64,000 nucleotides of DNA from Eutreptiella sp. 'Long Island Sound 2002'. Its lineage: Eukaryota; Protista; Euglenida. Below are positions 3,352-58,900 of this stretch, one piece after another. A program made the translations under genes and the position numbers. The stretch covers positions 5,146,001 through 5,210,000 of the forward strand of contig OZ038378.1 of NCBI GenBank assembly GCA_964036045.1. Direction: 5' to 3'. How positions within the stretch are numbered: position 1 is the first letter of the stretch; every line of letters begins with the position of its first letter. The notes beneath the pieces were generated by a model. That model saw only the letters and a list, made by a program, of their open reading frames with translations, searched no databases and was not told the origin of the DNA.

Positions 3352-3394
<43 letters not shown>

Positions 3395-6300: not shown

Positions 6301-8045
6301 AGTGCTGAGTTGCACAGACAGGGGCGGTCTCAGTCACAGGGACATGCGGGGACAGCGGACCACACTTTCTTTGCAGGTGAGGCTTGAAAGTCACACTCAG
6401 TAAAACAGGGGCTGATAAGCACAGAAAGGCGTTCCAACGATGTTGGCTGCGTGTCTGCACGAGGGAGTGCAACAAGAATATTGCGGAATACGGGATGCAG
6501 CGATGCTGAACCAATGTGCATGGAACACACCCGAGGTGCACACCTGTGGATTGTGAGACACACACCACATACACTTCGAGAGAAATTGGGGTCGCCCACA
6601 GGTACCCATACGGGTATAGCTGTACACTTACGGCTGCGTACGGCTCGGCTTGGAGCTCGCACACAGCTGTGTGTGGCAAGCAAAAACAAGGATACATGTA
6701 TTTTTGTGTCTCGGGGTCTGTGTCCGCCTGTCGACAGCCAAAAAAACTGCAAAGTAAATCGTAATGTAAAGCTGGAAATTGACAAGCAAAGCCCAATCCC
6801 AACAGGATTGCAACAGATTCCATGCGTTCCTTCTTGAGGAGGTAATGAAAACCCATAGACCAGAGAGAAATACTGCACCGCAGCCACGTGTCGCAGTGAT
6901 ATGTGTATTGCATCCCCATTTTGTTCTCCAGGGGTTGCCACTGCACACGCTACCATGCGCATCCCATACCATGCACATGTATTGGGGATCGGACCTTGGG
7001 TTCCAGCCATACACAAGCATCGACCCTAGCCCTGCATAGCTGTGCGCATTAGCCCGCCGTGCTTAATATATCCGGCTCTGCAGTGTACCCCGTACACAAC
7101 CCTAAACGGCTTTTTAAATTTATTGATTAACTTTTAATGTATCACTTCCCCTTGCCAAACGTGGCGGGTCCCGTGCGCCAATGACGGCGTTTTGTTTCTT
7201 GCATCAGTGCACCGCAGAAGAACCAGAGGCACTTTTCTCGAAACTTCGTTGTGAAGGCACTTGTTCCATTTGTTTTGTTTCTCTATCATGACTGATGCAA
7301 CTGGACTGCCCAGAGTCATCGTCGGACATTGCTTTGGAAAAAGAAACATCAGATAGTCGCACCCTCCCCAATGCAACTCGCCCTGGAAGCGACCGGTAGC
7401 ATACCGGTATCACACTTCTGGAGCCTGGGATCCACTCCATACACACTTTCAGCAATTTGGGGACATGCAGGAACACCAAATCAGAGTCTCACAGACCTGT
7501 TTCATGACCTCGAGTTGAGTCCGAAGGGAATCCAGTTCCTGGGACATATCCTCTGTGTTGCTGAGAAACTCCTGCTCCTTGCGCTGCACCTCCGAGTGGA
7601 ATTGGGATAATTTCATTTGGGCCACCTCCAGCTCGTTGCTCAAGTGCGCCGCACGTTTGGTCTCCCCCTCCAAGTCGCCTTGGGTCGAAACAAAGCCACG
7701 ATTCTGAGCAAACACTTTCTCGTTCAAATCATTGATCTCTTTGTCCTTTTCCTCAAGCAACTGCAATTGCTGGATCTCACGCTCACGGTCCCGGAGATTC
7801 CGATCCGCATCCTCTTTCGCCCGGCGGTCCTCTTCCTCCTTCCTGCGTTGCTGCTCTGCAAGCTGTTGCCGTTTGGCTTCCTCCTGCTGTCGCTTCTGAG
7901 CTGCTTCCTCTGCTTCCTTCTTCTTTTCCTGCTCTTCAGCCTGTAGCCTTTGAGCCTCCAGTTGAGCCTGCTGTTGCTTTGCTGCCTCCTCAACCTCTTT
8001 GGCAGCTTGATCGTCCTTGCCTCCTTTCCCTTTTTTGGGGGCCAT
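95..8045 (-). CDS. Long coiled-coil protein (possibly flagellar/cytoskeletal), at least 6 exons, continues past the left edge. Exons 8045-7497, 5974-5801, 4822-4446, 2542-2209, 1010-894, 312-95
   Basis: Starts MAPKKGKGGKDD with E/K/Q-rich heptads throughout. All junctions are GT-AG with consistent phases (0,0,2,0,0,2), e.g. MKQ|gtctgt...gccag|ENERKQ and GAG AG|gtaccc...caaaag|G CGT. TTCTTTCAG acceptor 10 nt upstream of the ATG. Confidence 0.85.
615..690. repeat. (GT)n microsatellite (intronic)
   Basis: Direct dinucleotide run. Confidence 0.95.
1459..1700 (+). mobile_element. Possible decayed reverse-transcriptase fragment (DIRS/LTR-like)
   Basis: Translation WVVLHLGRYYSTKPCMQLPFGWS resembles the RT 'LPFG' motif region. 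No YxDD found. Confidence 0.3.
3352..3393. repeat. (CCG)n microsatellite
   Basis: About 14 perfect CCG units. Confidence 0.95.
5087..5525. repeat. Compound (CA)n / (CCA)n microsatellite cluster
   Basis: CA runs at about 5087-5122, 5360-5380 and 5432-5456, followed by CCA repeats. Confidence 0.9.
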
Positions 8046-42001: not shown

Positions 42002-44478
42002 AAACCCTGTGAAATTTCAATGCAATATTTTCAGGGACTGCCACATCTCTCGACGTAGCCTGTGTGGGGGCGCCATGGCAGTGTCTGCAAGCATTCGCTA
42101 GCCCCCCCCCCCTCCCGCCCCTCCGAATCAGAGTCTTCTGATTTCGTGCTTCTGTTTCTCTTGAAGGGAAGCGACAAAGGGACAATAAAGCCGGCGATGT
42201 AACAATGGAGGGTCCACCGCCAGTTCTTGCCCCCTGTTGAGCTCAGGAACCTGCAGACTCTGCCCCCCGAAACCCAAAACATAGCCCAACCCACTGTCCA
42301 TAACCTGCTTCCCAATAACGATGGACAGAATATCGCACAGTCCATGCAATCTTCCTGAGGGTATTGTTCACTCATCAACATGATGTCCGATTCTTTTGGA
42401 TGTCCTGTTCAGGAGAGATGGGGGAGTTCCAGACAGGCTGGTTCGGTGCCGCGTAGTGCCAGCGGTGTCCAGTGCCTTTGTGTGACCTATTGTTGATCGA
42501 GGTGCTATTGAGAGGGCAAGCTGCTCACTGTGGCAGCAGACTGCCCCCAAGGCGTTCACTCCCCTCCCGGCACCTGCAGGCTTCACACAGCCAGTCCCAT
42601 GACTGTAAGGGTGCTACCTCTTCCTGGCTGAGCCTGTAACCAGAGCACAGTGGAGTACAGGCAGGGTATCATCACATTCACAGGAGCCACTACTTAGCAC
42701 TGGCACACTGCCTTGAGTGTCACGCTGCACAGGGCAGACCCAGGGTTCCCACAGCCTCTCCAATGACGGGCCGTTATCGAATCGCAAGCAGCTCAAAGTC
42801 AGGGGACACACCAACAGGGCTCCCTCTAATGCGCTGCCTCAGGGGGTGAGGCCCTGCGCACTGCAACAGTCACCACACAACGCTTGTGTCAGTGGCAGTG
42901 CAGTGTTGCCGTGCAGTGTTGTTCAGTCACAGCATTTGGCCAAACGGCAGGGTCAAGTATGTTACATGGAGTGCCCAATGCCGTGCATCAATGCATGGCA
43001 AGCCTCTTGAAGGGGGTTTTACTTTGCACTGAGAGAAGCGCAACGGAACCCTCCAGACACTAGTCCATTTGGTCTTTTGGCAGACCAGAGGAGTTTGAGT
43101 AATTCAAAGTGCCTGTGAGCTCCCACTGCACGCCCAATGTGGTGCATCAGAACTGGACAAATATGTAACATGGGGGCTGCACTTGCAATGCCATCAGCTC
43201 AATTCTCAAGCAGGAGGATAACTCCCACCCCTCCTACGCGGGGACATTCCGTCAATCAGCACCGACCCCAATCGAGCCCCCCACAGGTGCAAGCCCTCCA
43301 CCCCTCCTCACCAACTTTTCGTGGTATTCATGTGTATTTGTATACACGGGGGCCCCACAGTGTTGCCTTGTGCATAGTGTTTACAAACCACAGACGATGC
43401 AGCGTCTGAAGGTTGCACATTCCCCCCCCATCCCCCCCCCCAAAATCAGCCAGCAGTCGGGGCTTTCTGCAGATGTGGGTTCCAAAGACAAGAGCATGCA
43501 TCACATGAAGCACAAAGCAATTGATACATCCTTGTATGGGGACCTGGCATAGCCAACTACCGTTTGGGGTCAAATTAGGACCCTTGCACGGCCTACTTTG
43601 TGCATACCACCTGAACACGTGTACATGGCGCACGCACCAACTCAACTGAACTTTCATTTGCAGTCGGGCCACAAGCCAGTACACCCTGACCCAAAGGTTT
43701 GCTCTCGCCCTCTACCATTCCAACACAGTCCTCAAGGTGCTGCAAACCTCCTTACCCCCAGGCAGCGTACTTGTAACCTTGCCCCATGGCCATGGTGGGG
43801 GTCTAGCACTATCCTATAGTTCTCAATGCATCATGATGCAGGGGTTACGGTACTCAGCATGGCGCCAGCACCTGTACATCTCGCTGCCGCAAACCGCAAA
43901 CCGACCGGTGTCGTGTTGCCAGGCACCAGTCCATTCTCACTTTGTTGGCAGAAAGGTACCCATGGTCACTGACGAGCATCTGTTTTATGTGCTGCCGGTG
44001 CGTGCCATCGCACTGCTATGACACAGCTTTCCAATGGGGGGGTGAGGTGTGTGGGTGGAGGGGGGGAATTTGTGAAGGTGTGTGGAGGGGAGGCGGATCT
44101 GTCTGGGGGAGAGACGTTTTGCATACCACTGGCTGATTTGGGTGGGCACTTGTGCACCCAGATCGGCAGCCCATTTGTCGTGCAGAGTGGCCTGGTTTGC
44201 ATGTGATATGTGATGGGAAGGTTGAATTGGGGTCAATATGGGCACCTAGGGTACAGAAATAGGACGTCAAGTCCGTCATGTCGGCTGCAGATGTTCACTG
44301 CATGTGTGGCTCTGCTCCGCACTGATTTGCATAGATTACTGACATATATTGAGCACAAACGACCATTGAGCCACCCCTTCCAAACGCGGTTCCGCAGTGT
44401 CCCTCACCACCCTCTCTAACATTCCCAAACCTCCTGATTCCAACAACCCCCACCCTCTGCCCCCCCCCCCCCCCCGCG

Positions 44479-45083
44479 CCTACTCCCCCGTGCACCCACG
44501 CATCCCCCACAACCCCCGTCCGCGCAGCAAAGGCATGAAGGAGAGGGTAGGGGGTTTGTGTTGCGCTCGCCAAAGGATGGACTGAGCGCGGGAACTTGGA
44601 GGAGAAAGGTTGTTATGTGCCCCCGTCGGGGAAACGACCCCGCAAGTGGCCATCCCAGGGCCCACCAGCCGCCGTTGGGGAGAGGTACCTCACCGCCGGC
44701 TTGGGATGGCCGCTTGGACGCACCTGGCCAACGGCGAAGGCATTTGCCTTCCTCTGCGTGGACTCGACGCAGAGAAGTGAAACAGGGCAAGTCCGGGGGC
44801 TCCGTTGGCACAACCGACCAAGGGAAAGGGAAGGGAAGGAGTGTGGTGAGGCCGATGGGCACGGTGGCCTACAGAGGGAAAGGCCAAGGGAAGGGAAAGG
44901 GGAGGGGAGAGGGAAGGTTAGGGCAAGGAGGAAGAGGAAGGTCAAACGGTGGTGAGAAGCTGATGGGCACCACCGCCTATGGAGGGAAAGGGTCCAAGGG
45001 AAGGGCAGCGAATGGCGATCGGCCAGTAGGCGCCGCCAGCTGCAGACGAGATCATCACACCATGGCGTCATGCCAAAACCCCC
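44479..45083 (+). repeat. 605-bp direct repeat (pseudo-LTR-like) copy 1
   Basis: CCTACTCCCCCGTG...CATGCCAAAACCCCC; matches 49768-50372 and 55056-55660. Confidence 0.95.
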
Positions 45084-45295
45084 ACATACCACGCCTGACG
45101 TGGAGTGCCCCCACACGGGGGCTGTATGGCGCGAAAGGCGCTCTACGTGCAGAAGAAGAGGCACGACAACAACCCCGTTGGTCACAAAGCCATGGAGCGG
45201 AAGCGTCGGAGCATTGGAGAGAAGTGAGGTGTGGAAAAGGATAGGACACGAGATGGAGCAAGGGTGGAAAGGGAACATGGCTGCCAGAAGCAGGA

Positions 45296-48200
45296 TTGAA
45301 GGTGACCAACTATTGGGGTGCTCTATATAGGAGGACGGCCCAAAAAGGAAAAGGCAAGGGAACCCTCGGAAGGCGAGGAACGGTTGACCCAGGTTGGGTG
45401 AATGATGAGGAGGGCGGAGGAGTTCGCTTGCAGAGCCAAACACCGGAATTGGGAAGGAGAAAAGGGATAGGGAAGGGGAAGGGAGGAAAAGGCAAAGGGA
45501 AGGGGAGACAACACGTGGAACACACAGAAGCAAGGAGTGGAAGAGGAATCCGGCTGAGGATCCAGCATCAGCATCACCGAGGAATGGAACGCACCGAGGA
45601 AAGGAGAAGTAGGGGAATGGAAAGGAGGATGCACTATCCATGGTACAAAGAGAAGGTACCACTACAACGAACAACAGTGGAAGGAGAGGTGAGATGGACA
45701 TGGCAGCAGCATTTTGAGGATTGCCGCAGAGTTTGGCGAGAAGGTCCCAAAACACAAAAGTTGCGTCGATTGTGGCAACTAATAAAGGAAGAACAATGGA
45801 AATGGAGGACAAGTGGACAAGAACATCGGATCCCAAGATGGGAAGAGGAAGGAGTGGCGGAAGCATACATGATGTACCACAAGCCGACAGGCAAAGCGTA
45901 CGCGGGAGTAGCGTACAATGGACACCAAGCACGGTTAAAGAAGAGATGGAGCAACCGTTGGGGGGATGAAGACTTGGTAAGTAGGGTGATGAGAACAAGT
46001 GAATCAATGGCGGATTGGATAGTATGGCCCGTGGAGAGGTTTCCCGGACAACGAAGAGGGCACATGGCGTTTTGGAGGAGGTCAAGCATGAGGGAGGGGT
46101 TTTGGGCCACACACTTGGAATGTTGGTGGCCAAAAGGGTTCAATGAGGGAACGACAGGAGGGGAGCACAGGGAAGGGGCCAGAAGGGATTGGGCACACAG
46201 AAGGTACACATTCCAGAGGGCGCACAGGGAAGGTTTGGTGACCTCGGAGGAGGCGAAATCAAGACGAACAAAGCCACAACCAAGAAAGGGTGAATGGCAA
46301 GTGGAGCTCCCCAAGGACATATTGGAGACATGGAACCAAGCAGTCCGGGAAGCGGCAAGCCAAGGGAAAGAGACCATGGGATTGTTGTGGGGGACAAGGA
46401 CCGAAAATGGGGTCAAAGTAGGGGGTCTACACATACCAAGACACGACGTACAAACAAGCCACCACTGTGCAGTGGGAGATGAGGCGCTCACAGAGGCGGT
46501 CAGTTGGGGCGCATCCTTGGGAGGAAAATTGGTTGGTTGGATACACACGCATCCAGGACATGTGCCGGTGCTATCAGCCTTGGACGTGTGCACCCTCAAC
46601 ACAATTGGCCAAACGCTATGGTCAATTATACCGGAAGGAGGCCCAGCAGTTGGAGTGGTGCAAAGTTGGACCTCTCCAGCGGATGAAGTGGCGTGTGCCC
46701 CACTGAAGGGGGGTCTAAAGGCCTACACAATGTCCGTCTTGGGCATGGAGGTGGCAAACAGATGTGCCGCAATCCGCCGAAAGAAACCGGGAGTGGATCA
46801 CCGGTATCACGAACATCTTGCTGGAGTTTGGGATGATGATGACCCTCACCCGGTTGGGAGGGAGCCGGAGGAAGTGCCGGTGGTCCTCGTGGAGGCCGAG
46901 GATGGTGGTTGTATGGACATGGGAAACAACAGGTGGTGGACCAAATGGTTGGGAGCAGGAAGCACACCTAAGGAAAAGGAGAACACCAAGCCCGCCAACA
47001 ATGAGGAGAGTGATAGCAGCACGAGCAGCAACGGGATAGCGAGCACGGTCGGACCAGAAGCTTGGTCGCAAAAGCGTGGTCCCAAGCACGCATGTGGGCT
47101 ATGCTGCAGACCGTTGAGGGCCAAGGAGGGAGCAGTGAGGTGCAGCCAGGGGCACTGGATGCACTTGAAGTGTGCTGGGGTCACTGTCTCCCAGGCGAAG
47201 AAGGTGTTCCGCAGCAACAGGGTGTTCCAGTGTAGGTGCAGAAAGGCAAGGCCAGCCAAATGGTTGCGGGAGGAAAGAGAGAGGCACAAGCAGAGGAGGA
47301 GAGAACAACGCAGCAAAGCGAGGAAGGCAGGGGTGGCGCCGGAGGAACAACCCCCCAAGCCACAAGCACGGGCCGAACCACAGCAAAGTGACTCCGAGAG
47401 ACCGGAAGTGGTTGGAGTGGATGGCCATCGCATTGTTCTCGGGGGAAGAGTAGCACTAACAGGCATGAAGAAAAAGATGGAATTGGAGGGGAAGACAGGT
47501 GAGGTTGAAAGCATCATCCAGGAACAAGGAAAAGTAAGACTCCGAATGGACTGTGGCAGAAGGGTTTTGGTGTCATTGGATAGGGTCAGGGTGCAAGAGG
47601 TGGAGCACATGGGAGGCGCCGAGGACTCAAAAGCTGCCCAACAACAACAGCACGGGGAAGAAACAAAAGGACGCGGGGTGGCGGGAGACAATGAACCGCA
47701 CGGAAGAAAGGAGGAAAGGAGTGAAGAAGGAGAGATGGGAGGGCAGGAAGAAACATTTGAACTATGGAATGGGGTGAGGCTAGTAGGGATGAGACAACCG
47801 GAGTTGGAGGGCCACAAGGGGGTGTTGGAGGAGATCTACAAGGACAAAGTGCAAGTGTTGTTAGTGGGAGGGATGCGCCGAGTAAAAGTGGACAAGAAGA
47901 AGGTGGTCCCGGAGGTAGTTGAGCCCGTTGAGGTGCTGCCCCCGGGTTTTGAAGGATGGAGCTTTCTTGAACAGATTGGAGTGGGTAGTGCACCCACCAT
48001 GGATGAAGTGAAGGCCGCATACAAAAAGTGGGTGTTGCGGTTACATCCGGACAAGAACATGAACAACATTGCCAAAGCCACCCACCTGTTCAAAAGGTTG
48101 ACCTCCGGCTACGAGGGATGGAAAAGTGCGCCCGGGGTGACACCGCCAAGGCCGGCGGAGGAACCACCCAACTACCAGTTCAACCCCACATACTTTCGAT

Positions 48201-48763
48201 CCAATTTCTGCAACAGCACAAGTTCGGCGGGGCAAACAGCCCCGGAGGAAGCGCCACCAAGTGCCAAAAACCCAGAAACGGAGGGCGATGGAGAGGGTTT
48301 TTGGTCTTTCTTGTGGGGAAGCAAAAGGCCCGGTCGTTCCGAACATGCGAGTGGAATGGGGGCTAGCCACGGTGAGGGTACACCGAAGGGCGCACCGCCA
48401 CCGGGGTCGGGAACGCAACGGACCCGGCGCCTCTTGTTCCATGAGAAGTTCCGGTGGCACACGCACCACGTCCGCGCCATCCAAGCGGACCGGATCCTCG
48501 CTGAGAAAAGGAGGAGAGGGTGGTTCTCCGACTACCCCGAGGCAGGAAGCAACATGTACTTATTGGCACCAGACCAGGTGAACAAAGTGCGAGTGCTAGC
48601 CTCAACGGTATGGGTGCCGGAGGTGAGACGTTGGGAGCCGGAGGTGTTCATCATCGGGGAGGGCATCAACTTCACAGTGGAGGACACAACCAGGTTGATG
48701 CAAAACTTGCACAGGGCAAACGTGATTGCCGAGCAAGTAGGCATCCGGCTGTACAAGGAGTAG
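45296..48763 (+). CDS. Element ORF2, 1155 aa: GIY-YIG nuclease (45851-46146), AMSH-like JAMM/MPN+ (46295-46820), PHD-like finger (47093-47239), two KOW-like domains (47428-47590, 47755-47910), J-domain (47966-48116), unknown C-terminus
   Basis: Motifs EAYMMY..TGKAYAG...R...REGFW...PKGFN; KETMGLL...WIHTHPGHVPVLSALD; CGLC..C..H..H..C..CRC; EVKAAYKKWVLRLHPDKN. The true start codon is uncertain (the ORF is called from TTG). Confidence 0.85.
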   Translation: MKVTNYWGALYRRTAQKGKGKGTLGRRGTVDPGWVNDEEGGGVRLQSQTPELGRRKGIGKGKGGKGKGKGRQHVEHTEARSGRGIRLRIQHQHHRGMERTEERRSRGMERRMHYPWYKEKVPLQRTTVEGEVRWTWQQHFEDCRRVWREGPKTQKLRRLWQLIKEEQWKWRTSGQEHRIPRWEEEGVAEAYMMYHKPTGKAYAGVAYNGHQARLKKRWSNRWGDEDLVSRVMRTSESMADWIVWPVERFPGQRRGHMAFWRRSSMREGFWATHLECWWPKGFNEGTTGGEHREGARRDWAHRRYTFQRAHREGLVTSEEAKSRRTKPQPRKGEWQVELPKDILETWNQAVREAASQGKETMGLLWGTRTENGVKVGGLHIPRHDVQTSHHCAVGDEALTEAVSWGASLGGKLVGWIHTHPGHVPVLSALDVCTLNTIGQTLWSIIPEGGPAVGVVQSWTSPADEVACAPLKGGLKAYTMSVLGMEVANRCAAIRRKKPGVDHRYHEHLAGVWDDDDPHPVGREPEEVPVVLVEAEDGGCMDMGNNRWWTKWLGAGSTPKEKENTKPANNEESDSSTSSNGIASTVGPEAWSQKRGPKHACGLCCRPLRAKEGAVRCSQGHWMHLKCAGVTVSQAKKVFRSNRVFQCRCRKARPAKWLREERERHKQRRREQRSKARKAGVAPEEQPPKPQARAEPQQSDSERPEVVGVDGHRIVLGGRVALTGMKKKMELEGKTGEVESIIQEQGKVRLRMDCGRRVLVSLDRVRVQEVEHMGGAEDSKAAQQQQHGEETKGRGVAGDNEPHGRKEERSEEGEMGGQEETFELWNGVRLVGMRQPELEGHKGVLEEIYKDKVQVLLVGGMRRVKVDKKKVVPEVVEPVEVLPPGFEGWSFLEQIGVGSAPTMDEVKAAYKKWVLRLHPDKNMNNIAKATHLFKRLTSGYEGWKSAPGVTPPRPAEEPPNYQFNPTYFRSNFCNSTSSAGQTAPEEAPPSAKNPETEGDGEGFWSFLWGSKRPGRSEHASGMGASHGEGTPKGAPPPGSGTQRTRRLLFHEKFRWHTHHVRAIQADRILAEKRRRGWFSDYPEAGSNMYLLAPDQVNKVRVLASTVWVPEVRRWEPEVFIIGEGINFTVEDTTRLMQNLHRANVIAEQVGIRLYKE

Positions 48764-49342
48764 AAGATGGAAGCCAAGTGAGAAGCGGACAAGCCCCACC
48801 CGCGGGTGACAAGAGGGCGTGGAAGCGCACGGTCGCACAGTTCTGACGGCGTCAAGGTGACGGGGTGCAGCTTGTTCAGCGCAGTGCCGAGCACAAAGGC
48901 GCGACCCGGAACGCACCATGGCATGGCCTAGGCCTTGAAGCAAGAGGGACTGAGACCGGGCGCCAAGCGACCCAGGAACCCAAGGGACGGGCAACCCGGC
49001 GCCGGGTGAAGAAAGAAGAACAATGAAAGCAAAAAGCCTGATGGAAAGGAGAGTCTCACACCATCAACATGGCTCTGCTGGGGAGGAGAGGATCCTCCAG
49101 CCACCGAGACTCACACTGGGGAGCCGCGGCCCCCAGTGATACAGCAACAAGGCACAACGATGTGGTCTGAGGTACGGCCGTGGACGGGCCTCTGGACCCA
49201 TGCCCAATGGAGACGGCGCCGCAGTCTCCATTGGATGCGCCCCGGCTACCACAACGCGCAGCGAGCTTTCTCGCCGGCAGAGTAGGGGGCAAGGCCAAAC
49301 AACAGGCAGGGGGAAGGCAACCCCCGCACTTTTTTAGCCAGG

Positions 49343-50533
49343 GTGGTGACCAACACCGACCAAAACAAAACAATGAACTCTACACGTGCACCGAGTTCTT
49401 CTCGGGGGGTCCAATGGGGCCTCAGCGAGATGCCCGATGTGGCAACGCAAGCCCACCGGGGGCCGCGCTCTCAAGGGAGTGACCACGGCAGTAAGTCCCA
49501 GCGTGCTGGCACTGAGAAGCGAGCAGGGGAGAGACTCCTTCCCTCGCGTAGCAACTCAACCAGAAAAGGGACGCACCACGTCGTCAAGCGCCCGGACCAA
49601 GCCGGGAGAAGGGGGCCAGCAAGGGGCCCTACGCACCTCCACCCAACACGGGACACCACCGTCAACCCAACAACAACTCGCTCCTATGTTGAGGTGGTCC
49701 GGGGAGTCGCGCAACGAAGTGGGCGGCCAGCGACGGTAAGAGGCCCACCCCACGTCACCCGCTACATCCTACTCCCCCGTGCACCCACGCATCCCCCACA
49801 ACCCCCGTCCGCGCAGCAAAGGCATGAAGGAGAGGGTAGGGGGTTTGTGTTGCGCTCGCCAAAGGATGGACTGAGCGCGGGAACTTGGAGGAGAAAGGTT
49901 GTTATGTGCCCCCGTCGGGGAAACGACCCCGCAAGTGGCCATCCCAGGGCCCACCAGCCGCCGTTGGGGAGAGGTACCTCACCGCCGGCTTGGGATGGCC
50001 GCTTGGACGCACCTGGCCAACGGCGATGGCATTTGCCTTCCTCTGCGTGGACTCGACGCAGAGAAGTGAAACAGGGCAAGTCCGGGGGCTCCGTTGGCAC
50101 AACCGACCAAGGGAAAGGGAAGGGAAGGAGTATGGTGAGGCCGATGGGCACGGTGGCCTACAGAGGGAAAGGCCAAGGGAAGGGAAAGGGGAGGGGAGAG
50201 GGAAGGTTAGGGCAAGGAGGAAGAGGAAGGTCAAACGGTGGTGAGAAGCTGATGGGCACCACCGCCTATGGAGGGAAAGGGTCCAAGAGAAGGGCAGCGA
50301 ATGGCGATCGGCCAGTAGGCGCCGCCAGCTGCAGACGAGATCATCACACCATGGCGTCATGCCAAAACCCCCACATACCACGCCTGACGTGGAGTGCCCC
50401 CACACGGGGGCTGTATGGCGCGAAAGGCGCTCTACGTGCAGAAGAAGAGGCACGACAACAACCCCGTTGGTCACAAAGCCATGGAGCGGAAGCGTCGGAG
50501 CATTGGAGAGAAGTGAGGTGTGGAAAAGGATAG
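49343..50533 (+). CDS. Element ORF1 candidate (R/G/K-rich, 396 aa), same frame as ORF2 and separated from it by a single TAG
   Basis: Long open frame with SYVEVV and GKGKG repeats. The T-poor strand makes chance ORFs likely, and the third copy has a premature TAA at 55402. Confidence 0.3.
   Translation: MVTNTDQNKTMNSTRAPSSSRGVQWGLSEMPDVATQAHRGPRSQGSDHGSKSQRAGTEKRAGERLLPSRSNSTRKGTHHVVKRPDQAGRRGPARGPTHLHPTRDTTVNPTTTRSYVEVVRGVAQRSGRPATVRGPPHVTRYILLPRAPTHPPQPPSAQQRHEGEGRGFVLRSPKDGLSAGTWRRKVVMCPRRGNDPASGHPRAHQPPLGRGTSPPAWDGRLDAPGQRRWHLPSSAWTRRREVKQGKSGGSVGTTDQGKGKGRSMVRPMGTVAYRGKGQGKGKGRGEGRLGQGGRGRSNGGEKLMGTTAYGGKGSKRRAANGDRPVGAASCRRDHHTMASCQNPHIPRLTWSAPTRGLYGAKGALRAEEEARQQPRWSQSHGAEASEHWREVRCGKG
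49768..50372 (+). repeat. 605-bp direct repeat copy 2 (shared between the two units)
   Basis: Three substitutions seen versus copy 1. Confidence 0.95.
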
Positions 50534-50584
50534 GACACGAGATGGAGCAAGGGTGGAAAGGGAACATGGCTGCCAGAAGCAGGA

Positions 50585-53500
50585 TTGAAGGTGACCAACT
50601 ATTGGGGTGCTCTATATAGGAGGACGGCCCAAAAAGGAAAAGGCAAGGGAACCCTCGGAAGGCGAGGAACGGTTGACCCAGGTTGGGTGAATGATGAGGA
50701 GGGCGGAGGAGTTCGCTTGCAGAGCCAAACACCGGAATTGGGAAGGAGAAAAGGGATAGGGAAGGGGAAGGGAGGAAAAGGCAAAGGGAAGGGGAGACAA
50801 CACGTGGAACACACAGAAGCAAGGAGTGGAAGAGGAATCCGGCTGAGGATCCAGCATCAGCATCACCGAGGAATGGAACGCACCGAGGAAAGGAGAAGTA
50901 GGGGAATGGAAAGGAGGATGCACTATCCATGGTACAAAGAGAAGGTACCACTACAACAAACAACAGTGGAAGGAGAGGTGAGATGGACATGGCAGCAGCA
51001 TTTTGAGGATTGCCGCAGAGTTTGGCAAGAAGGTCCCAAAACACAAAAGTTGCGTCGATTGTGGCAACTAATAAAGGAAGAACAATGGAAATGGAGGACA
51101 AGTGGACAAGAACATCGGATCCCAAGATGGGAAGAGGAAGGAGTGGCGGAAGCATACATGATGTACCACAAGCCGACAGGCAAAGCGTACGCGGGAGTAG
51201 CGTACAATGGACACCAAGCACGGTTAAAGAAGAGATGGAGCAACCGTTGGGGGGATGAAGACTTGGTAAGTAGGGTGATGAGAACAAGTGAATCAATGGC
51301 GGATTGGATAGTATGGCCCGTGGAGAGGTTTCCCGGACAACGAAGAGGGCACATGGCGTTTTGGAGGAGGTCAAGCATGAGGGAGGGGTTTTGGGCCACA
51401 CACTTGGAATGTTGGTGGCCAAAAGGGTTCAATGAGGGAACGACAGGAGGGGAGCACAGGGAAGGGGCCAGAAGGGATTGGGCACACAGAAGGTACACAT
51501 TCCAGAGGGCGCACAGGGAAGGTTTGGTGACCTCGGAGGAGGCGAAATCAAGACGAACAAAGCCACAACCAAGAAAGGGTGAATGGCAAGTGGAGCTCCC
51601 CAAGGACATATTGGAGACATGGAACCAAGCAGTCCGGGAAGCGGCAAGCCAAGGGAAAGAGACCATGGGATTGTTGTGGGGGACAAGGACCGAAAATGGG
51701 GTCAAAGTAGGGGGTCTACACATACCAAGACACGACGTACAAACAAGCCACCACTGTGCAGTGGGAGATGAGGCGCTCACAGAGGCGGTCAGTTGGGGCG
51801 CATCCTTGGGAGGAAAATTGGTTGGTTGGATACACACGCATCCAGGACATGTGCCGGTGCTATCAGCCTTGGACGTGTGCACCCTCAACACAATTGGCCA
51901 AACGCTATGGTCAATTATACCGGAAGGAGGCCCAGCAGTTGGAGTGGTGCAAAGTTGGACCTCTCCAGCGGATGAAGTGGCGTGTGCCCCACTGAAGGGG
52001 GGTCTAAAGGCCTACACAATGTCCGTCTTGGGCATGGAGGTGGCAAACAGATGTGCCGCAATCCGCCGAAAGAAACCGGGAGTGGATCACCGGTATCACG
52101 AACATCTTGCTGGAGTTTGGGATGATGATGACCCTCACCCGGTTGGGAGGGAGCCGGAGGAAGTGCCGGTGGTCCTCGTGGAGGCCGAGGATGGTGGTTG
52201 TATGGACATGGGAAACAACAGGTGGTGGACCAAATGGTTGGGAGCAGGAAGCACACCTAAGGAAAAGGAGAACACCAAGCCCGACAACAATGAGGAGAGT
52301 GATAGCAGCACGAGCAGCAACGGGACAGCGAGCACGGTCGGACCAGAAGCTTGGTCGCAAAAGCGTGGTCCCAAGCACGCATGTGGGCTATGCTGCAGAC
52401 CGTTGAGGGCCAAGGAGGGAGCAGTGAGGTGCAGCCAGGGGCACTGGATGCACTTGAAGTGTGCTGGGGTCACTGTCTCCCAGGCGAAGAAGGTGTTCCG
52501 CAGCAACAGGGTGTTCCAGTGTAGGTGCAGAAAGGCAAGGCCAGCCAAATGGTTGCGGGAGGAAAGAGAGAGGCACAAGCAGAGGAGGAGAGAACAACGC
52601 AGCAAAGCGAGGAAGGCAGGGGTGGCGCCGGAGGAACAACCCCCAAGCCACAAGCACGGGCCGAACCACAGCAAAGTGACTCCGAGAGACCGGAAGTGGT
52701 TGGAGTGGATGGCCATCGCATTGTTCTCGGGGGAAGAGTAGCACTAACAGGCATGAAGAAAAAGATGGAATTGGAGGGGAAGACAGGTGAGGTTGAAAGC
52801 ATCATCCAGGAACAAGGAAAAGTAAGACTCCGAATGGACTGTGGCAGAAGGGTTTTGGTGTCATTGGATAGGGTCAGGGTGCAAGAGGTGGAGCACATGG
52901 GAGGCGCCGAGGACTCAAAAGCTGCCCAACAACAACAACACGGGGAAGAAACAAAAGGACGCGGGGTGGCGGGAGACAATGAACCGCACGGAAGAAAGGA
53001 GGAAAGGAGTGAAGAAGGAGAGATGGGAGGGCAGGAAGAAACATTTGAACTATGGAATGGGGTGAGGCTAGTAGGGATGAGACAACCGGAGTTGGAGGGC
53101 CACAAGGGGGTGTTGGAGGAGATCTACAAGGACAAAGTGCAAGTGTTGTTAGTGGGAGGGATGCGCCGAGTAAAAGTGGACAAGAAGAAGGTGGTCCCGG
53201 AGGTAGTTGAGCCCGTTGAGGTGCTGCCCCCGGGTTTTGAAGGATGGAGCTTTCTTGAACAGATTGGAGTGGGTAGTGCACCCACCATGGATGAAGTGAA
53301 GGCCGCATACAAAAAGTGGGTGTTGCGGTTACATCCGGACAAGAACATGAACAACATTGCCAAAGCCACCCACCTGTTCAAAAGGTTGACCTCCGGCTAC
53401 GAGGGATGGAAAAGTGCGCCCGGGGTGACACCGCCAAGGCCGGCGGAGGAACCACCCAACTACCAGTTCAACCCCACATACTTTCGATCCAATTTCTGCA

Positions 53501-54051
53501 ACAGCACAAGTTCGGCGGGGCAAACAGCCCCGGAGGAAGCGCCACCAAGTGCCAAAAACCCAGAAACGGAGGGCGATGGAGAGGGTTTTTGGTCTTTCTT
53601 GTGGGGAAGCAAAAGGCCCGGTCGTTCCGAACATGCGAGTGGAATGGGGGCTAGCCACGGTGAGGGTACACCGAAGGGCGCACCGCCACCGGGGTCGGGA
53701 ACGCAACGGACCCGGCGCCTCTTGTTCCATGAGAAGTTCCGGTGGCACACGCACCACGTCCGCGCCATCCAAGCGGACCGGATCCTCGCTGAGAAAAGGA
53801 GGAGAGGGTGGTTCTCCGACTACCCCGAGGCAGGAAGCAACATGTACTTATTGGCACCAGACCAGGTGAACAAAGTGCGAGTGCTAGCCTCAACGGTATG
53901 GGTGCCGGAGGTGAGACGTTGGGAGCCGGAGGTGTTCATCATCGGGGAGGGCATCAACTTCACAGTGGAGGACACAACCAGGTTGATGCAAAACTTGCAC
54001 AGGGCAAACGTGATTGCCGAGCAAGTAGGCATCCGGCTGTACAAGGAGTAG
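50585..54051 (+). pseudogene. Element ORF2 copy 2 with a 1-bp deletion frameshift (C6 to C5 near 52640)
   Basis: Matches 45296-48763 apart from a few substitutions and is split into the 718-aa and 508-aa ORFs. The indel could be a homopolymer sequencing error. Confidence 0.85.
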
Positions 54052-55055
54052 AAGATGGAAGCCAAGTGAGAAGCGGACAAGCCCCACCCGCGGGTGACAA
54101 GAGGGCGTGGAAGCGCACGGTCGCACAGTTCTGACGGCGTCAAGGTGACGGGGTGCAGCTTGTTCAGCGCAGTGCCGAGCACAAAGGCGCGACCCGGAAC
54201 GCACCATGGCATGGCCTAGGCCTTGAAGCAAGAGGGACTGAGACCGGGCGCCAAGCGACCCAGGAACCCAAGGGACGGGCAACCCGGCGCCGGGTGAAGA
54301 AAGAAGAACAATGAAAGCAAAAAGCCTGATGGAAAGGAGAGTCTCACACCATCAACATGGCTCTGCTGGGGAGGAGAGGATCCTCCAGCCACCGAGACTC
54401 ACACTGGGGAGCCGCGGCCCCCAGTGATACAGCAACAAGGCACAACGATGTGGTCTGAGGTACGGCCGTGGACGGGCCTCTGGACCCATGCCCAATGGAG
54501 ACGGCGCCGCAGTCTCCATTGGATGCGCCCCGGCTACCACAACGCGCAGCGAGCTTTCTCGCCGGCAGAGTAGGGGGCAAGGCCAAACAACAGGCAGGGG
54601 GAAGGCAACCCCCGCACTTTTTTAGCCAGGGTGGTGACCAACACCGACCAAAACAAAACAATGAACTCTACACGTGCACCGAGTTCTTCTCGGGGGGTCC
54701 AATGGGGCCTCAGCGAGATGCCCGATGTGGCAACGCAAGCCCACCGGGGGCCGCGCTCTCAAGGGAGTGACCACGGCAGTAAGTCCCAGCGTGCTGGCAC
54801 TGAGAAGCGAGCAGGGGAGAGACTCCTTCCCTCGCGTAGCAACTCAACCAGAAAAGGGACGCACCACGTCGTCAAGCGCCCGGACCAAGCCGGGAGAAGG
54901 GGGCCAGCAAGGGGCCCTACGCACCTCCACCCAACACGGGACACCACCGTCAACCCAACAACAACTCGCTCCTATGTTGAGGTGGTCCGGGGAGTCGCGC
55001 AACGAAGTGGGCGGCCAGCGACGGTAAGAGGCCCACCCCACGTCACCCGCTACAT

Positions 55056-55660
55056 CCTACTCCCCCGTGCACCCACGCATCCCCCACAACCCCCGTCCGC
55101 GCAGCAAAGGCATGAAGGAGAGGGTAGGGGGTTTGTGTTGCGCTCGCCAAAGGATGGACTGAGCGCGGGAACTTGGAGGAGAAAGGTTGTTATGTGCCCC
55201 CGTCGGGGAAACGACCCCGCAAGTGGCCATCCCAGGGCCCACCAGCCGCCGTTGGGGAGAGGTACCTCACCGCCGGCTTGGGATGGCCGCTTGGACGCAC
55301 CTGGCCAACGGCGATGGCATTTGCCTTCCTCTGCGTGGACTCGACGCAGAGAAGTGAAACAGGGCAAGTCCGGGGGCTCCGTTGGCACAACCGACCAAGG
55401 GTAAGGGAAGGGAAGGAGTGTGGTGAGGCCGATGGGCACGGTGGCCTACAGAGGGAAAGGCCAAGGGAAGGGAAAGGGGAGGGGAGAGGGAAGGTTAGGG
55501 CAAGGAGGAAGAGGAAGGTCAAAGGGTGGTGAGAAGCTGATGGGCACCACCGCCTATGGAGGGAAAGGGTCCAAGGGAAGGGCAGCCAATGGCGATCGGC
55601 CAGTAGGCGCCGCCAGCTGCAGACGAGATCATCACACCATGGCGTCATGCCAAAACCCCC
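55056..55660 (+). repeat. 605-bp direct repeat copy 3 (3' end of the array)
   Basis: Homology to the unit stops after GCCAAAACCCCC. Confidence 0.95.
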
Positions 55661-55927
55661 CCCCGCGACCCCTCCAACCTTCCCTTTGCAGTTAGCAACC
55701 TTTGCAACAAGGTGTTGTTCAGACATATACGGCACGATGCCCCCCCCCCCCCACCACCACCACTTCATCATAACGGGCAGGGTACAGGGACGGGGAATAA
55801 TAATATTGGGAGTTGTGCAGGGCGAGGGGGCCCAATTTTGTGCCGACTGACCATGGCGATGCAGCATCCCGCTTGCAACCCTCTGCATGTATACCATTTA
55901 TCTTTACCTGAAGCACGAGGTGGCACC

Positions 55928-58900
55928 ATGGATCATTTGCCCAAGAACAAGCTGCTCCGGGAAATGGCAAGGAGACCTGCCTTTGGTATCTTCTGTTCCC
56001 TGCCCCCTGTCGCTGGAGGTCCCGTGTATTCAGCAGTTGATAGCACCAAGCAGGAGAAAGAAACATAGGGTCTGCAGCATTCAGTGCAGCCTTTGTCAGA
56101 TGTTTATCTAGGTTGCTCTAGGCGACTAGGCCTCTAGGGTGCATCCAGGCTACTCTAGGGTGCATCTAGGCTACTCCTGGATGCATATAGGCTACTCTAG
56201 GGTGCATGCAGGCTACTCTGGGGCATATAGGCAACTGTCGGGTGCATGTAGGCTACTGAGGGTACTCCAGGGTGTTTGACATGATAATGGCTGATGGTTC
56301 GGCAACAGCGAAAGACAAGGACTGAGGTCATCTTGTTTGATGGTATAGTGTACATGGAACACAGCATGAGGGTGTGATTGATGCGGTCAACCTGTTTGCA
56401 TTGCACCATGTCACCGCTACTTTCTTCAGTTTTGAATGCATTTGTGAGCAGGCCTATGCTGCCCTACCCATGCAGCTCCAAAGGCTCCAAAGCATCCTGC
56501 TGTTGCCACTCTTGGTCCTGCAGTGGCTGCCCTCCCTCTCAGATGTCCGGCGCTGGTCGCGTGCGTATGCAACATTCGGCCCTCAGCAGTTGCTCTTCCA
56601 TTTTCGCATGCGTGGCATCCGCAGCTGTGTGGCTTGTGGTAGACTGATTCTGCCTGGCGAGAAGTATTATGAATGTGGCCACTGCAACGACTACAACGTG
56701 TGTGCGAGCTGCCACCGGGACACTGTGCAACGACCCAGTGCATGTGTTCTGGACAGGCAGCACTGCATGTTCTTGGAGCACGAGGTGTTAGTAGTGAACG
56801 TGCAGCCACTGCTTGCAAAAGCCTGCTGCACCGCCGACGCTCTTATGGTGGCCTTCTCTGCCTATGCCCAGCGCCCCTGCCTTGGACATCGGCCTCAGGA
56901 GGGGCACACAGGTCACACAACCTCCTCTCTCTGTGGCGAGCAGGTTACACGCGGGTTGTGCATCAACATCACCTGCAGCAACCGCAAAAGAGGCAACGTG
57001 CCATAATTCGGGGGCTGCCCCCCATCAGTGGCAGAGTTTGCCATTGACACCCCTTCAGGCAGGCCAGCGCTTGAGGGGGGCAGGGCCGGCGGCCCAAGAA
57101 GGGGATTGCTGGCCGATGTGCTGTCGTGCACCATCAATCGTGCTCAATGTCAACTGTCAATGATGGATACACAGTGTAGCTTTGCTTGGCGCATGGTGCA
57201 CACATTATGGCAACCGCCACCACCAAATAAGGGTTGTGCCAAGCCACCTTGCTGTTGAAGGTCTAGCAAGTGGGCTAATCATCGGCTGAAAATTGCTTGC
57301 CACATTTCAATAGCAACAAGCATGCAAGCCTCCAGCACGATGCCTAGATAATTCGTGGTCTTCTTTTGCTTACATGCAAAATTTTCACACCACCCCAATT
57401 ATAAGCACGCGCTTGCTTATTTTTTTTTGCTTGCTTATAATTGTTGCTTGGTTATCATCGGAGCATCCCCTGTTTTCACTACAGAAAGATGGCTCTCCCT
57501 GACACCAATGACCCCCATTTCTTTTATGCTTTGCCGGTTGCAGCTGAGGGCTCTGGTGCTCCAGCCGCGAAGCCTAGGAGCTGCGCCAGCCAGGGAGGGG
57601 GTAGGGCGGTACATGTAGCCCAGCCAGCCAGCTACCGAGCGCCGAGCAATCGGGCCCCCCTTGGTAACTCTATTTGGAGGTCCCACAAATAGTGCCATGG
57701 AGGTTACAGGACATTGCACCATGGGAGGTGGGGGGGTTCGTTCGTGCCACCTATCACATGGGCGTGCGTCAACCCCATGGCTGCCAATGAGCCTTGGATA
57801 CATCTGCGTATCTACAGCACAGGTGGACCAAATGGCAGCAAGCAAGCAACAATGAATGGAAAGGCAAAGGTAGAGCCATGGCCGATGCCAGTTTCCCTAT
57901 CATGCCTCGCGCCCCATCAAGCTGATTCCGGCAGAAAAGCGCGCTCATACAATGTGCATGTGTTCCTGGCTTGCTGTTGGTCAGGCCTGGGATGGCACCT
58001 TCTGGCCACTTGTGATACTACAGACTGCACCTGGTTTGTGCATCTACTGTGCAACCCATGACAAGTAGATGGGAGGCTGCCAATTGTGTTAAGGAGCACA
58101 AGTTGAATAATAAACAGTTGGTCAAGGTTTGGTACCCCCTACATTCAATTGCACCCTCAGAACAGTTCGGTGTATAACCTGTAAACTTGGCTCCAATTTG
58201 CACATTGGTAGGGCTTGTAGGGCATGCACCCACTAGGCTCTCTTTCAGCATCCACTGTTTTGCATAGTTCCAGCAAGGTTATCATGTTGTTATCATCAAA
58301 AATCAGATCTTTTTAAATCTGCGTGTTCAGACTGGCTGGTCTCTGGGCTTGTGACCATCCCCATACAAGCCTGATGTCAAGGTGACACTTCCAAGGGGGG
58401 GGGGCAATTGGCAACTTGCAACCACCAGTCCTCCTGACTGAGGGAGCCGGAGGGGACACAGTTAGGCCACCAAAGGCGCCAAGTAGTTAAAAGCGGGGAG
58501 CTGGAGGTCTTCCTGCTGCCGAGCCGAAAAAGACAAGCCTGAGCCAGGTTGATGCCGTCCGGGGTGCACATAGCTGCACACAACGTGTTCATGCCAGACG
58601 TGGAGGATAGTAGCTGATGCTGATGCTGATGGGCTGTACCCACCCGTATTCTTTCCCAAGTATACGCATGACGAAAGCGTAAAATCTGGTGTATTTTTGT
58701 CGCTTGTTGAGTTTGCCCCTGCCGTTTTTTTCTTGCTTTGGATGGGCATGTTATCGGGAATGGATTGCTCCACAGGCAACTGCTCGAACTCTTGAGGTGC
58801 TCATGCACATGTTTGGCGTGCCAGCACATCTCGCTCGTTTCCATTCTACTGGATGTGATTCATGGATCGCCCTCGATGGCACACACTGCACTCAACTTGC

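Follow-up and report, generated by a model that had tools for sequence, protein, structure and literature searches.

The window analysed here, a 64,000-nucleotide stretch of the euglenid Eutreptiella sp. 'Long Island Sound 2002' (contig OZ038378.1, positions 5,146,001 to 5,210,000 of the forward strand), holds an open reading frame (ORF) of 1155 codons at 45296-48763. A first-pass annotation, made from the sequence alone, had described this ORF as uninterrupted, as lying inside a young tandem repeat, and as encoding a mobile-element protein that joins a GIY-YIG nuclease to an AMSH-type deubiquitinase, a PHD finger, two KOW-like domains and a DnaJ domain. The frame is indeed open throughout, and the repeat is real: a head-to-tail array at 44479-55660 comprises 2.1 units with a period of 5289 bp, and the units are 99.8% identical. 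Comparison with the rest of the source genome identified the array, with high probability, as a derivative of a Penelope-like retrotransposon from which the reverse transcriptase (RT) has been deleted, and revealed an autonomous 8.71-kb parent in which a JAMM metalloprotease and a J-domain belong to an accessory module downstream of the RT. The features of the locus are as follows.

44460..44478, + strand: left copy of the target site, (C)16 then GCG, read directly; CCCCGCG occurs again at 55661-55667
44479..45083, + strand: tail fragment, a 5'-truncated upstream copy with the element's last 605 bp only, which acts as a pseudo-long terminal repeat (pseudo-LTR) and ends at the family's fixed 3' end, ...CATGCCAAAACCCCC
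45084..50372, + strand: unit 1, shortened by an internal deletion to 5,289 bp as against 8,710 bp and containing the 1155-codon ORF; placed by alignment to the full-length copy L021, the 8,710 bp being taken from L030 and L031
45242..45244, + strand: in-frame TAG where other copies have CAG; contigs of other copies have C at 45242, and both window units have TAG
45296..48763, + strand: ORF of 1155 codons counted from TTG, open, by translation of the window
45854..46150, + strand: GIY-YIG endonuclease without Zn-fingers (Chlamys type), by alignment with homologues
46237..46238, + strand: deletion junction with 2-bp microhomology, at which 3,345 bp (1,115 codons) were lost in frame, by alignment to L021
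46295..46612, + strand: JAMM/MPN+ metalloprotease, nearest to AMSH/Sst2, by Pfam and solved-structure relatives
47084..47245, + strand: Cys/His-rich finger, C-x2-C ... C ... H-x2-H-x2-C ... C-x-C, PHD-like by pattern only
47423..47599, + strand: first KOW/SH3-like repeat, by alignment to its counterpart at 47753-47908 and to the pair present in a second family
47753..47908, + strand: second KOW/Tudor-like SH3 barrel, by an AlphaFold2 (AF2) model with a confidence (pLDDT) of about 80
47957..48121, + strand: J-domain with HPD, by Pfam DnaJ (PF00226)
48431..48760, + strand: conserved C-terminal domain common to family 2 and to the USP-bearing relative P0060, by alignment; ratio of nonsynonymous to synonymous polymorphism (pN/pS) 0.08
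48764..50372, + strand: 3' region of 1.6 kb with terminus CCAAAACCCCC, the last 605 bp of which are repeated in the pseudo-LTR, by comparison of copy ends
50373..55660, + strand: unit 2, with the same deletion as unit 1 and a truncated ORF at 50585-52741, by unit-to-unit alignment

To the left of the array stands (C)16GCG and to its right CCCCGCG; the repetition of the site in this poly-C tract marks a target-site duplication. The two units are separated by 10 substitutions and by one base pair missing from unit 2, which corresponds to unit-1 position 47351 (directly after position 52639 in unit 2) and shifts the frame of unit 2. Five of the 11 differences fall within 185 bp of the tail (50114-50299 versus 55402-55587), and the leader fragment at 44479-45083 agrees with the tail of unit 1, not with that of unit 2; the cluster of differences and the match of the leader are hints of template switching or gene conversion.

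In order to place the ORF among its relatives, the 2.28-Gb source genome was searched in six frames, which returned thousands of candidate pieces. Apart from the window itself, the 39 best-matching places aligned with the window protein from residues 303-311 to 1155 only (mostly 307-1155), at 98% identity, and the surrounding open frames reached up to 2,709 codons. The copy L021 begins with the same N-terminus and endonuclease, continues through 1,115 codons that are missing from the window, and ends with the part from JAMM to the C-terminus; the window aligns to it as two blocks, with L021rc 3037-6379 skipped. The segment deleted from the window comprises a CxC linker, the RT, a CCCH finger and an acidic spacer. 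When a 301-bp probe covering the deletion junction was compared with the genome, its full-length matches were the two window units only, and contigs from four public runs stop at the junction and go on as full-length sequence on both sides. The GIY-YIG-JAMM fusion of the window is a private, one-off deletion product without RT, and not the design of the element; the arrangement of GIY-YIG followed by JAMM, at first taken to be the element's own, is due to the 3,345-bp in-frame loss, and elsewhere CxC, RT and CCCH lie between the two domains. The window copy, whose RT is gone, cannot move by itself. Full-length copies with RT were recovered, and copies of the JAMM family are spread over at least 25 contigs; the proposal of a Penelope-like mobile-element protein stands for the family, of which the window copy is an RT-less derivative. 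The interest lies in this family as a whole, the window copy being a unique and defective member. Family copies concentrate strongly in a small number of 100-400 kb regions, at C18:13.16-13.35 Mb, C22:16.08-16.44 Mb and C8:70.73-70.89 Mb, with further clusters at C3:13.09-13.16 Mb, C25:12.48-12.58 Mb and C4:23.45-23.57 Mb.

The full-length unit measures 8,710 bp and its frame at least 2,174 codons. All seven full-length copies examined (L021, L023, L024, L026, L029, L030 and L031) have a partial copy ahead of them and a common frame of 2,174 codons from one ATG (MERTEERR...); the same start is likely to be that of the window ORF, in which the first in-frame ATG is codon 97 (nt 45584) and would yield 1059 amino acids (aa). 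The polyprotein consists, in order, of GIY-YIG, CxC, RT, CCCH, acidic spacer, JAMM, Cys/His finger, two KOW-like barrels, J-domain and C-terminal domain. Within the segment that the window lacks, L021 exhibits the CxC motif SCNC (aa 919-922), then a D-R-G motif, the pre-RT motif LPYIYGIWK..K...RWISG, and RT motifs A (GDFVAMYPS), B (KGFGMGLKCAVFLANL), C (YRFVDDMF) and D/E (FLGADL), plus a thumb, and its CCCH finger reads CWYGWRCRRKSCPFEH. The acidic spacer of L021, between the CCCH finger (aa 1503) and JAMM (aa 1885), gave only a weak Pfam match, to WDR47_COR (E 0.0046); it contains a duplicated D(T/S)DS(D/N)(V/I)SIL(T/R)WLQGL(K/R) followed by GGQ, and the duplicated motif could be of the SUMO- or ubiquitin-interaction type. 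In seven of seven full-length copies the main frame also extends without a stop over 400-535 codons ahead of the first ATG inside the unit, across the pseudo-LTR junction and a Gly/Lys-rich region (window 49343-50533), and two ATGs stand just before the 3' terminus. Translation might start inside the pseudo-LTR; the window units carry a TAG in that stretch, and the one at 45242 shuts the frame that the full-length copies keep open across the junction (open upstream in 7/7).

Each segment of the window protein was then compared with domain profiles and, for part of the molecule, with solved folds. JAB and DnaJ were recovered directly and GIY-YIG by way of homologues, as the first-pass annotation had anticipated; the PHD finger was not recovered. 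A Pfam scan of the N-terminal 335 aa of the window protein and of the L021 endonuclease and RT segments yielded no GIY-YIG or RVT match, a profile of the endonuclease alignment found no GIY-YIG match among PDB sequences, and a single-sequence AF2 model of the endonuclease was unusable (pLDDT 42). Support for the domain comes from homologous segments, of which 6/15 matched Pfam GIY-YIG (PF01541) over the same alignment columns (best E 7.6e-6), as did 9/44 further relatives; the relative P0035, whose GIY-YIG is above the Pfam cut-off, aligns with the query from the EAYMMY motif onward, and the window family retains the residues Y, Y-x-G, R, E and N. The JAMM domain was scored by Pfam at 25.6 bits for JAB (PF01398) and 27.8 bits for Prok-JAB (PF14464), both over their cut-offs; its catalytic motif E...HTHPx7SxxD is intact (KETMGLL ... 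HTHPGHVPVLSALD), and its best solved relatives are AMSH/Sst2 (E 9e-6), in agreement with the AMSH-type assignment made at the outset.

The Cys/His-rich finger had been called a PHD finger, a designation that rests on the pattern of Cys and His residues and that no profile supported: Pfam PHD did not match it, even in isolation, and the Pygopus PHD appeared at an E of about 1. In family 2 (see below) the colinear position is taken by a finger with a weak likeness to PHD/C1. The C-terminal module was modelled by AF2 from a seven-sequence alignment, A3, which takes in a JAMM copy, three Pfam-supported OTU or USP bearers and two family 2 copies. In this model the second KOW-like repeat forms a five-stranded barrel, whose best fold match is Spt5 KOW6-7 (Z 10.1, root-mean-square deviation 1.3 A over 57 residues), the next being to Tudor and NusG-KOW domains. 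Pfam KOW stayed below threshold on the repeats (E 0.011-0.3); of the pair of KOW-like domains, the second is supported as an SH3 barrel by its fold. The J-domain scored 30.7 bits against a DnaJ cut-off of 27.8, contains the sequence LHPDKN with HPD intact, as had been noted, finds its solved relatives among J-domains and was modelled as helical (pLDDT about 80) with J-domain fold matches; HPD is invariant over the seven elements of A3. The C-terminal domain was of low confidence in the A3 model, and look-ups in the Atlas gave no lead for it and no usable match for the finger/KOW region.

To relate the full-length element to known retroelements, the endonuclease-plus-RT part of L021 was compared by phmmer with 1.84 billion representative proteins, producing 796 matches at E <= 1e-3. 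The relatives obtained in this way are metagenome proteins, with the exception of one Diplonema papillatum gene model. A word-indexed protein search with endonuclease plus RT found nothing; the same type of search with the C-terminal module returned a single 93%-identical fragment on an ENA contig, the DNA of which is 98.5-99.1% identical to the element and which is therefore probably from the same species. A scrambled element fragment of about 99% identity lies in a different public assembly, evidently from the same species (ENA ERZ25074135, ctg10907_40x_l, 1736600-1758210), with the pieces in the order RT piece, J-domain part, JAMM part and tail. The consensus of 44 relatives contains a GIY-YIG-like domain, CxC, PVDKA, LPYLY..PK.HK and RT motifs A to E. 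In the full-length family these RT motifs line up with the relatives, as do the thumb and LPYxY..K..K...R.I.G, and SCNC of L021 aligns with a C-x-C in 10 of them; the DK(G/A) column reads DRG in the JAMM-family subclade and DKL or DKA in more distant relatives, and is followed by N/H...CK..Y. From motif A (aa 1198) to motif B (aa 1292) there are about 94 residues, the same as in these relatives, with which alone the spacing was compared. RVT_1 was weakly matched in 10/44 relatives, and the Atlas neighbours of the family RT are rotifer and arthropod RT/GIY-YIG clusters.

Chlamys elements are characterized by an N-terminal GIY-YIG without zinc fingers, CxC and DK motifs, a long insert between RT motifs A and B, pseudo-LTRs, (C)n or (CA)n targets and, usually, no hammerhead (Craig, Yushenova, Rodriguez and Arkhipova 2021, PMC8557442). 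The JAMM family matches this N-terminal-endonuclease (Chlamys) type of Penelope-like element in the features listed there other than the insert between motifs A and B, a match that argues for its assignment to that type. The ends and targets of the copies were in keeping with a poly-C target, as originally suggested. The 3' end is fixed at ...CATGCCAAAACCCCC in 3 + 19 other copies, about 13/19 of which continue into C-tracts; the copy L021 (L021/L025) is flanked on both sides by a (C)nTTTTGGTCCA target-site duplication, so that the duplications of both the window array and L021 lie in C-runs. The 5' start varies, the L021 array beginning 360 bp further upstream in the unit than the window array. 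First-look candidate counts rose from 96 with an RT probe to 187 with a JAMM-side probe and 1,122 with a 3' tail probe (last 200 bp), and contig depth, a poor measure, climbs about 100-fold toward the 3' end; both rises fit frequent 5' truncation. Rfam scans (E <= 1) of window positions 43500-56500 and of L021 detected no hammerhead ribozyme.

The relatives differ in the deubiquitinase that they carry. Downstream of the RT, an OTU match, above Pfam's cut-off in some and below it in others, occurs in P0002, P0004, P0005, P0007, P0010, P0013, P0056, P0066 and P0069; USP is present in P0060 (1.5e-32), P0126, P0131 and P0137 plus 5/44 relatives, and Josephin in 2/44 (1.2e-10). DnaJ is found in P0002, P0007, P0010 and P0060, PHD in five relatives at positions other than that of the window finger, and zf-CCCH in P0010. 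JAMM was in none of the 63 relatives scanned outside the source genome's family, and local hidden Markov models seeded from the relatives' OTU and PHD domains matched neither family of the source genome. The second family of this genome, family 2, is represented by three copies:

L039 1157-5539, - strand: family 2 copy
L040 4863-9305, - strand: family 2 copy
L042 3896-9053, + strand: family 2 copy

Its RT is 46-55% identical to that of P0010 and is followed by CCCH, by an OTU-like Cys loop, by fingers resembling PHD/C1 (E 0.006-0.009), and then by the two barrels, DnaJ (1e-15) and lastly the C-terminal domain; apart from the protease it is colinear with the window family, at only about 22% identity. 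In L039 a His-loop-like APHFWNIL precedes the Cys loop, DGLCLFHA, an order that is unusual for OTU. In a tree of 62 RT cores the JAMM family was nested in a clade with 99% support (SH-aLRT), the other 10 rows of which comprise seven with Pfam OTU, family 2 with its sub-threshold OTU-like region, and two too short to tell. Since the JAMM family lies inside an OTU-bearing clade, JAMM most likely replaced OTU in this lineage, the direction being read from a midpoint root only. The USP bearers form a separate clade with a Diplonema sequence, P0089 (KAJ9460032.1, Diplonema papillatum 'Kinesin-like protein 3', 2811 aa). P0089 has a PLE-type RT at aa 1345-1771 beside a kinesin motor, and is probably an intronic element merged into a kinesin gene model.

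In order to gain insight into constraint on the module, 24 distinct copies were compared over codons 315-1155. Their mean nucleotide divergence was 0.74% and the overall pN/pS 0.20; by domain, values were 0.11 for JAMM, 0.09 for the Cys/His finger, 0.08 for DnaJ and 0.08 for the C-terminal domain. The 130-codon linker between JAMM and the finger gave 0.15 and the other linkers about 0.5. Unexpectedly, the two KOW-like barrels showed no constraint in this sample (0.52). Variants common to several copies numbered 3, 4 and 22 at codon positions 1, 2 and 3, respectively. Taken together, the accessory module looks functional. With regard to expression, 21% of the sampled words were present in an estuary metatranscriptome, where they fell in the C-terminal module and the tail and were 95-99% identical. 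The Euglena-type 24-nt spliced-leader sequence had 5,458 dispersed occurrences in the genome, on both strands (for example C1:29492-29515), and its reversed control had 0, in keeping with a euglenid host; these occurrences may be spliced-leader RNA genes or retroposed trans-spliced mRNAs, and none was present on the element copies examined.

The best overall explanation, to which we assign a probability of roughly 0.85, is that of an RT-deleted, Chlamys-like Penelope-type insertion with an autonomous 8.71-kb parent and an accessory module. Its identity and the deletion are the firmest part of this account and can be held with strong confidence. The locus would be a single insertion in a poly-C tract, composed of a 5'-truncated leader copy and then two head-to-tail units, both going back to a common source, either a template or an early event after insertion, in which 3,345 bp were lost in frame and the endonuclease was thereby joined directly to the C-terminal accessory module. 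In the autonomous element, GIY-YIG would nick beside C-runs, the C-rich 3' end of the RNA would pair with the nicked target and target-primed reverse transcription would follow, with frequent 5' truncation and template jumps giving rise to pseudo-LTR and tandem forms. The mechanism of the accessory module, namely ubiquitin removal combined with Hsp70 recruitment, is a more tentative proposal, put at somewhat below even odds and drawn from the identity and conservation of the domains: the protease may strip ubiquitin either off the element's own ribonucleoprotein (RNP) or polyprotein or, where the element inserts, off chromatin and repair factors; the J-domain may activate host Hsp70 to fold, assemble or remodel a very large RNP; and the finger and barrels may tether the complex to chromatin or nucleic acid.

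Several observations weigh against this explanation. The residue equivalent to His-31 of I-TevI is an Arg in the endonuclease of the JAMM family. Several OTU matches in relatives fall below Pfam's cut-off, and that of family 2 is itself sub-threshold (Pfam E 0.066) and covers the N-terminal half of the model only; the RT tree was a quick maximum-likelihood search with a midpoint root, in which the window row had an unusual composition. The metatranscriptome signal may be DNA carry-over, and no contig there spans the deletion. The copies used for pN/pS were picked as best protein-level matches to the query, a choice that lowers pN; less exposed to this bias are the lower pN/pS in four of five domains than in most linkers, the module order kept between families, and the invariance of HPD in seven elements.

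Three other accounts of the same data were weighed. The JAMM fold, like the other deubiquitinase folds, might be a polyprotein-processing protease for which deubiquitination is secondary or absent, a use that would suit a very long polyprotein (at least 2,174 aa) whose modules are parted by long low-complexity linkers that evolve faster than the domains (pN/pS about 0.5), and for which viral OTU and PLpro, which both process polyproteins and remove ubiquitin, offer a parallel. However, what OTU, USP, Josephin and JAMM have in common is cleavage at the ubiquitin C-terminus and not one peptide specificity, JAMM enzymes are isopeptidases, and neither an LRGG, RLRG or RGG-type site nor a ubiquitin-like domain was found in the polyprotein; we regard this account as improbable. 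Still less probable, at long odds, is that the C-terminal module is a useless passenger, a fragment of a host AMSH-like J-protein gene captured once. Retroelements do transduce host sequence, the nearest solved relatives of the JAMM domain are cellular AMSH enzymes, and among the 63 relatives scanned JAMM is confined to the source genome's family; yet the module order recurs in family 2 despite only about 22% identity, the pairing of a deubiquitinase with DnaJ is seen again in distant relatives sampled elsewhere, neither HPD nor the JAMM catalytic motif has been lost, and the variants that copies have in common sit mainly at third codon positions (3, 4, 22). The folds OTU, USP, Josephin and JAMM recur at the same position, and a J-domain follows in several relatives and in both families of the genome; since these deubiquitinases are non-homologous, their recurrence at one position is the pattern of a selected function rather than of a passenger.

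The A-B-A-B-A layout with its 605-bp direct repeat resembles an LTR retrotransposon with shared LTRs, and in Euglena gracilis much of the published assembly is assigned to LTR elements by LTR-finding tools (PMC11252322); a host tandem gene family would be a further way to read the array. The left boundary of the repeat differs among copies (360 bp further upstream in L021) and only the 3' end is fixed, Pfam detected no integrase, RNase H or gag, the family RT groups with RTs preceded by GIY-YIG, and copies are dispersed over at least 25 contigs. Both the LTR and the host-gene accounts were rejected on the variable repeat start, the absence of LTR-element domains and the dispersal of the copies, and we consider them extremely improbable. 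The pseudo-LTR arrays of the Penelope-like family carry a warning for annotation in that they are easily miscalled as LTR elements, and so does the striking GIY-YIG-JAMM protein of the window, a one-off product of deletion.

As to novelty, the literature searched describes no Penelope-like element in Euglenozoa, no JAMM protease or J-domain on any retroelement, and no exchange of deubiquitinase folds within one RT clade; the statement made at first sight, that no described retroelement combines JAMM with a J-domain, holds within that literature. A deubiquitinase on a Chlamys-type element is not wholly new, as Chlamys-1_cBra of Chara braunii has a Josephin-like C-terminal extension (PMC8557442). 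The JAMM family carries the endonuclease-first Penelope-like clade into a euglenid, and Penelope-like elements are the least understood class of retrotransposons, with no in vitro system (PMC8557442). Conceivably, although the balance leans slightly against it, a clade of endonuclease-first elements in euglenozoans and other protists depends on a built-in ubiquitin eraser plus Hsp70 recruiter, the protease fold of which was swapped several times (OTU, USP, Josephin and, in the JAMM family, JAMM), with a J-domain and a conserved C-terminal domain also carried by many members. If so, removal of ubiquitin marks and hijacking of Hsp70 would be required steps of retrotransposition; the module would parallel, in a retrotransposon, what viruses achieve with deubiquitinases and J-domains, and would point to a defence of these hosts against transposons that is based on ubiquitin. 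The question thus raised is whether the elements need ubiquitin erasure and Hsp70 to transpose, and which ubiquitylated target is involved.

When compared with Chlamys elements, which reach 8.2 kb and include an accessory PHD in Chlamydomonas (PMC8557442), the JAMM family has the same zinc-finger-less GIY-YIG ahead of the RT, CxC and D-K-type motifs, pseudo-LTRs from partial tandems, (C)n targets, lack of a canonical hammerhead and presence of accessory domains. It differs in its euglenid (Discoba) host, which is absent from the taxa in PMC8557442, and in its size, the 8.71-kb unit and the frame of at least 2,174 aa being above the ranges given there. Its accessory module is much larger (CCCH, JAMM, two barrels, J-domain and a further conserved domain), a JAMM metalloprotease replaces the cysteine protease, the DK motif is DRG, and the window copy is without RT. 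Naiad elements of invertebrates likewise have an N-terminal GIY-YIG, CxC, pseudo-LTRs, microsatellite targets and no hammerhead. In contrast, Naiad keeps CCHH and CX2-5CxxC fingers in and before the endonuclease, where L021 has no cysteine and the window copy a single non-conserved one, and Naiad elements are short single-module elements of animals. Dualen non-LTR retrotransposons carry a ubiquitin-protease-like cysteine-protease domain (PMC8557442). They resemble the JAMM family as retroelements with an accessory domain of this kind, but belong to another class, with two endonucleases and a LINE-type RT, and no J-domain has been reported in them.

Two groups of proteins outside the retroelements also bear comparison. 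AMSH, AMSH-LP and Sst2 are K63-specific JAMM deubiquitinases of the endosomal pathway. Their E-x-x-G-x-L, the IP...TS..C..DE stretch and HTHPx7SxxD align with the JAMM of the element; the alignment covers the first ~95 residues of the catalytic domain, whereas Ins-2 and the second-zinc region are unmatched, and the element's JAMM is without a MIT domain or STAM-binding region and sits in a retroelement polyprotein. Among animal viruses, deubiquitinases include the OTU of nairoviruses and arteriviruses, PLpro of coronaviruses and the UL36 USP of herpesviruses, and a J-domain is carried by the polyomavirus T-antigen; to our knowledge none of these viruses joins a deubiquitinase and a J-domain on one reverse-transcriptase polyprotein. 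Their proteins have no sequence relationship to those of the element beyond common superfamilies, and the likeness is that of genetic parasites equipped with their own ubiquitin protease and/or an HPD J-domain that engages, or in the element is predicted to engage, host Hsp70.

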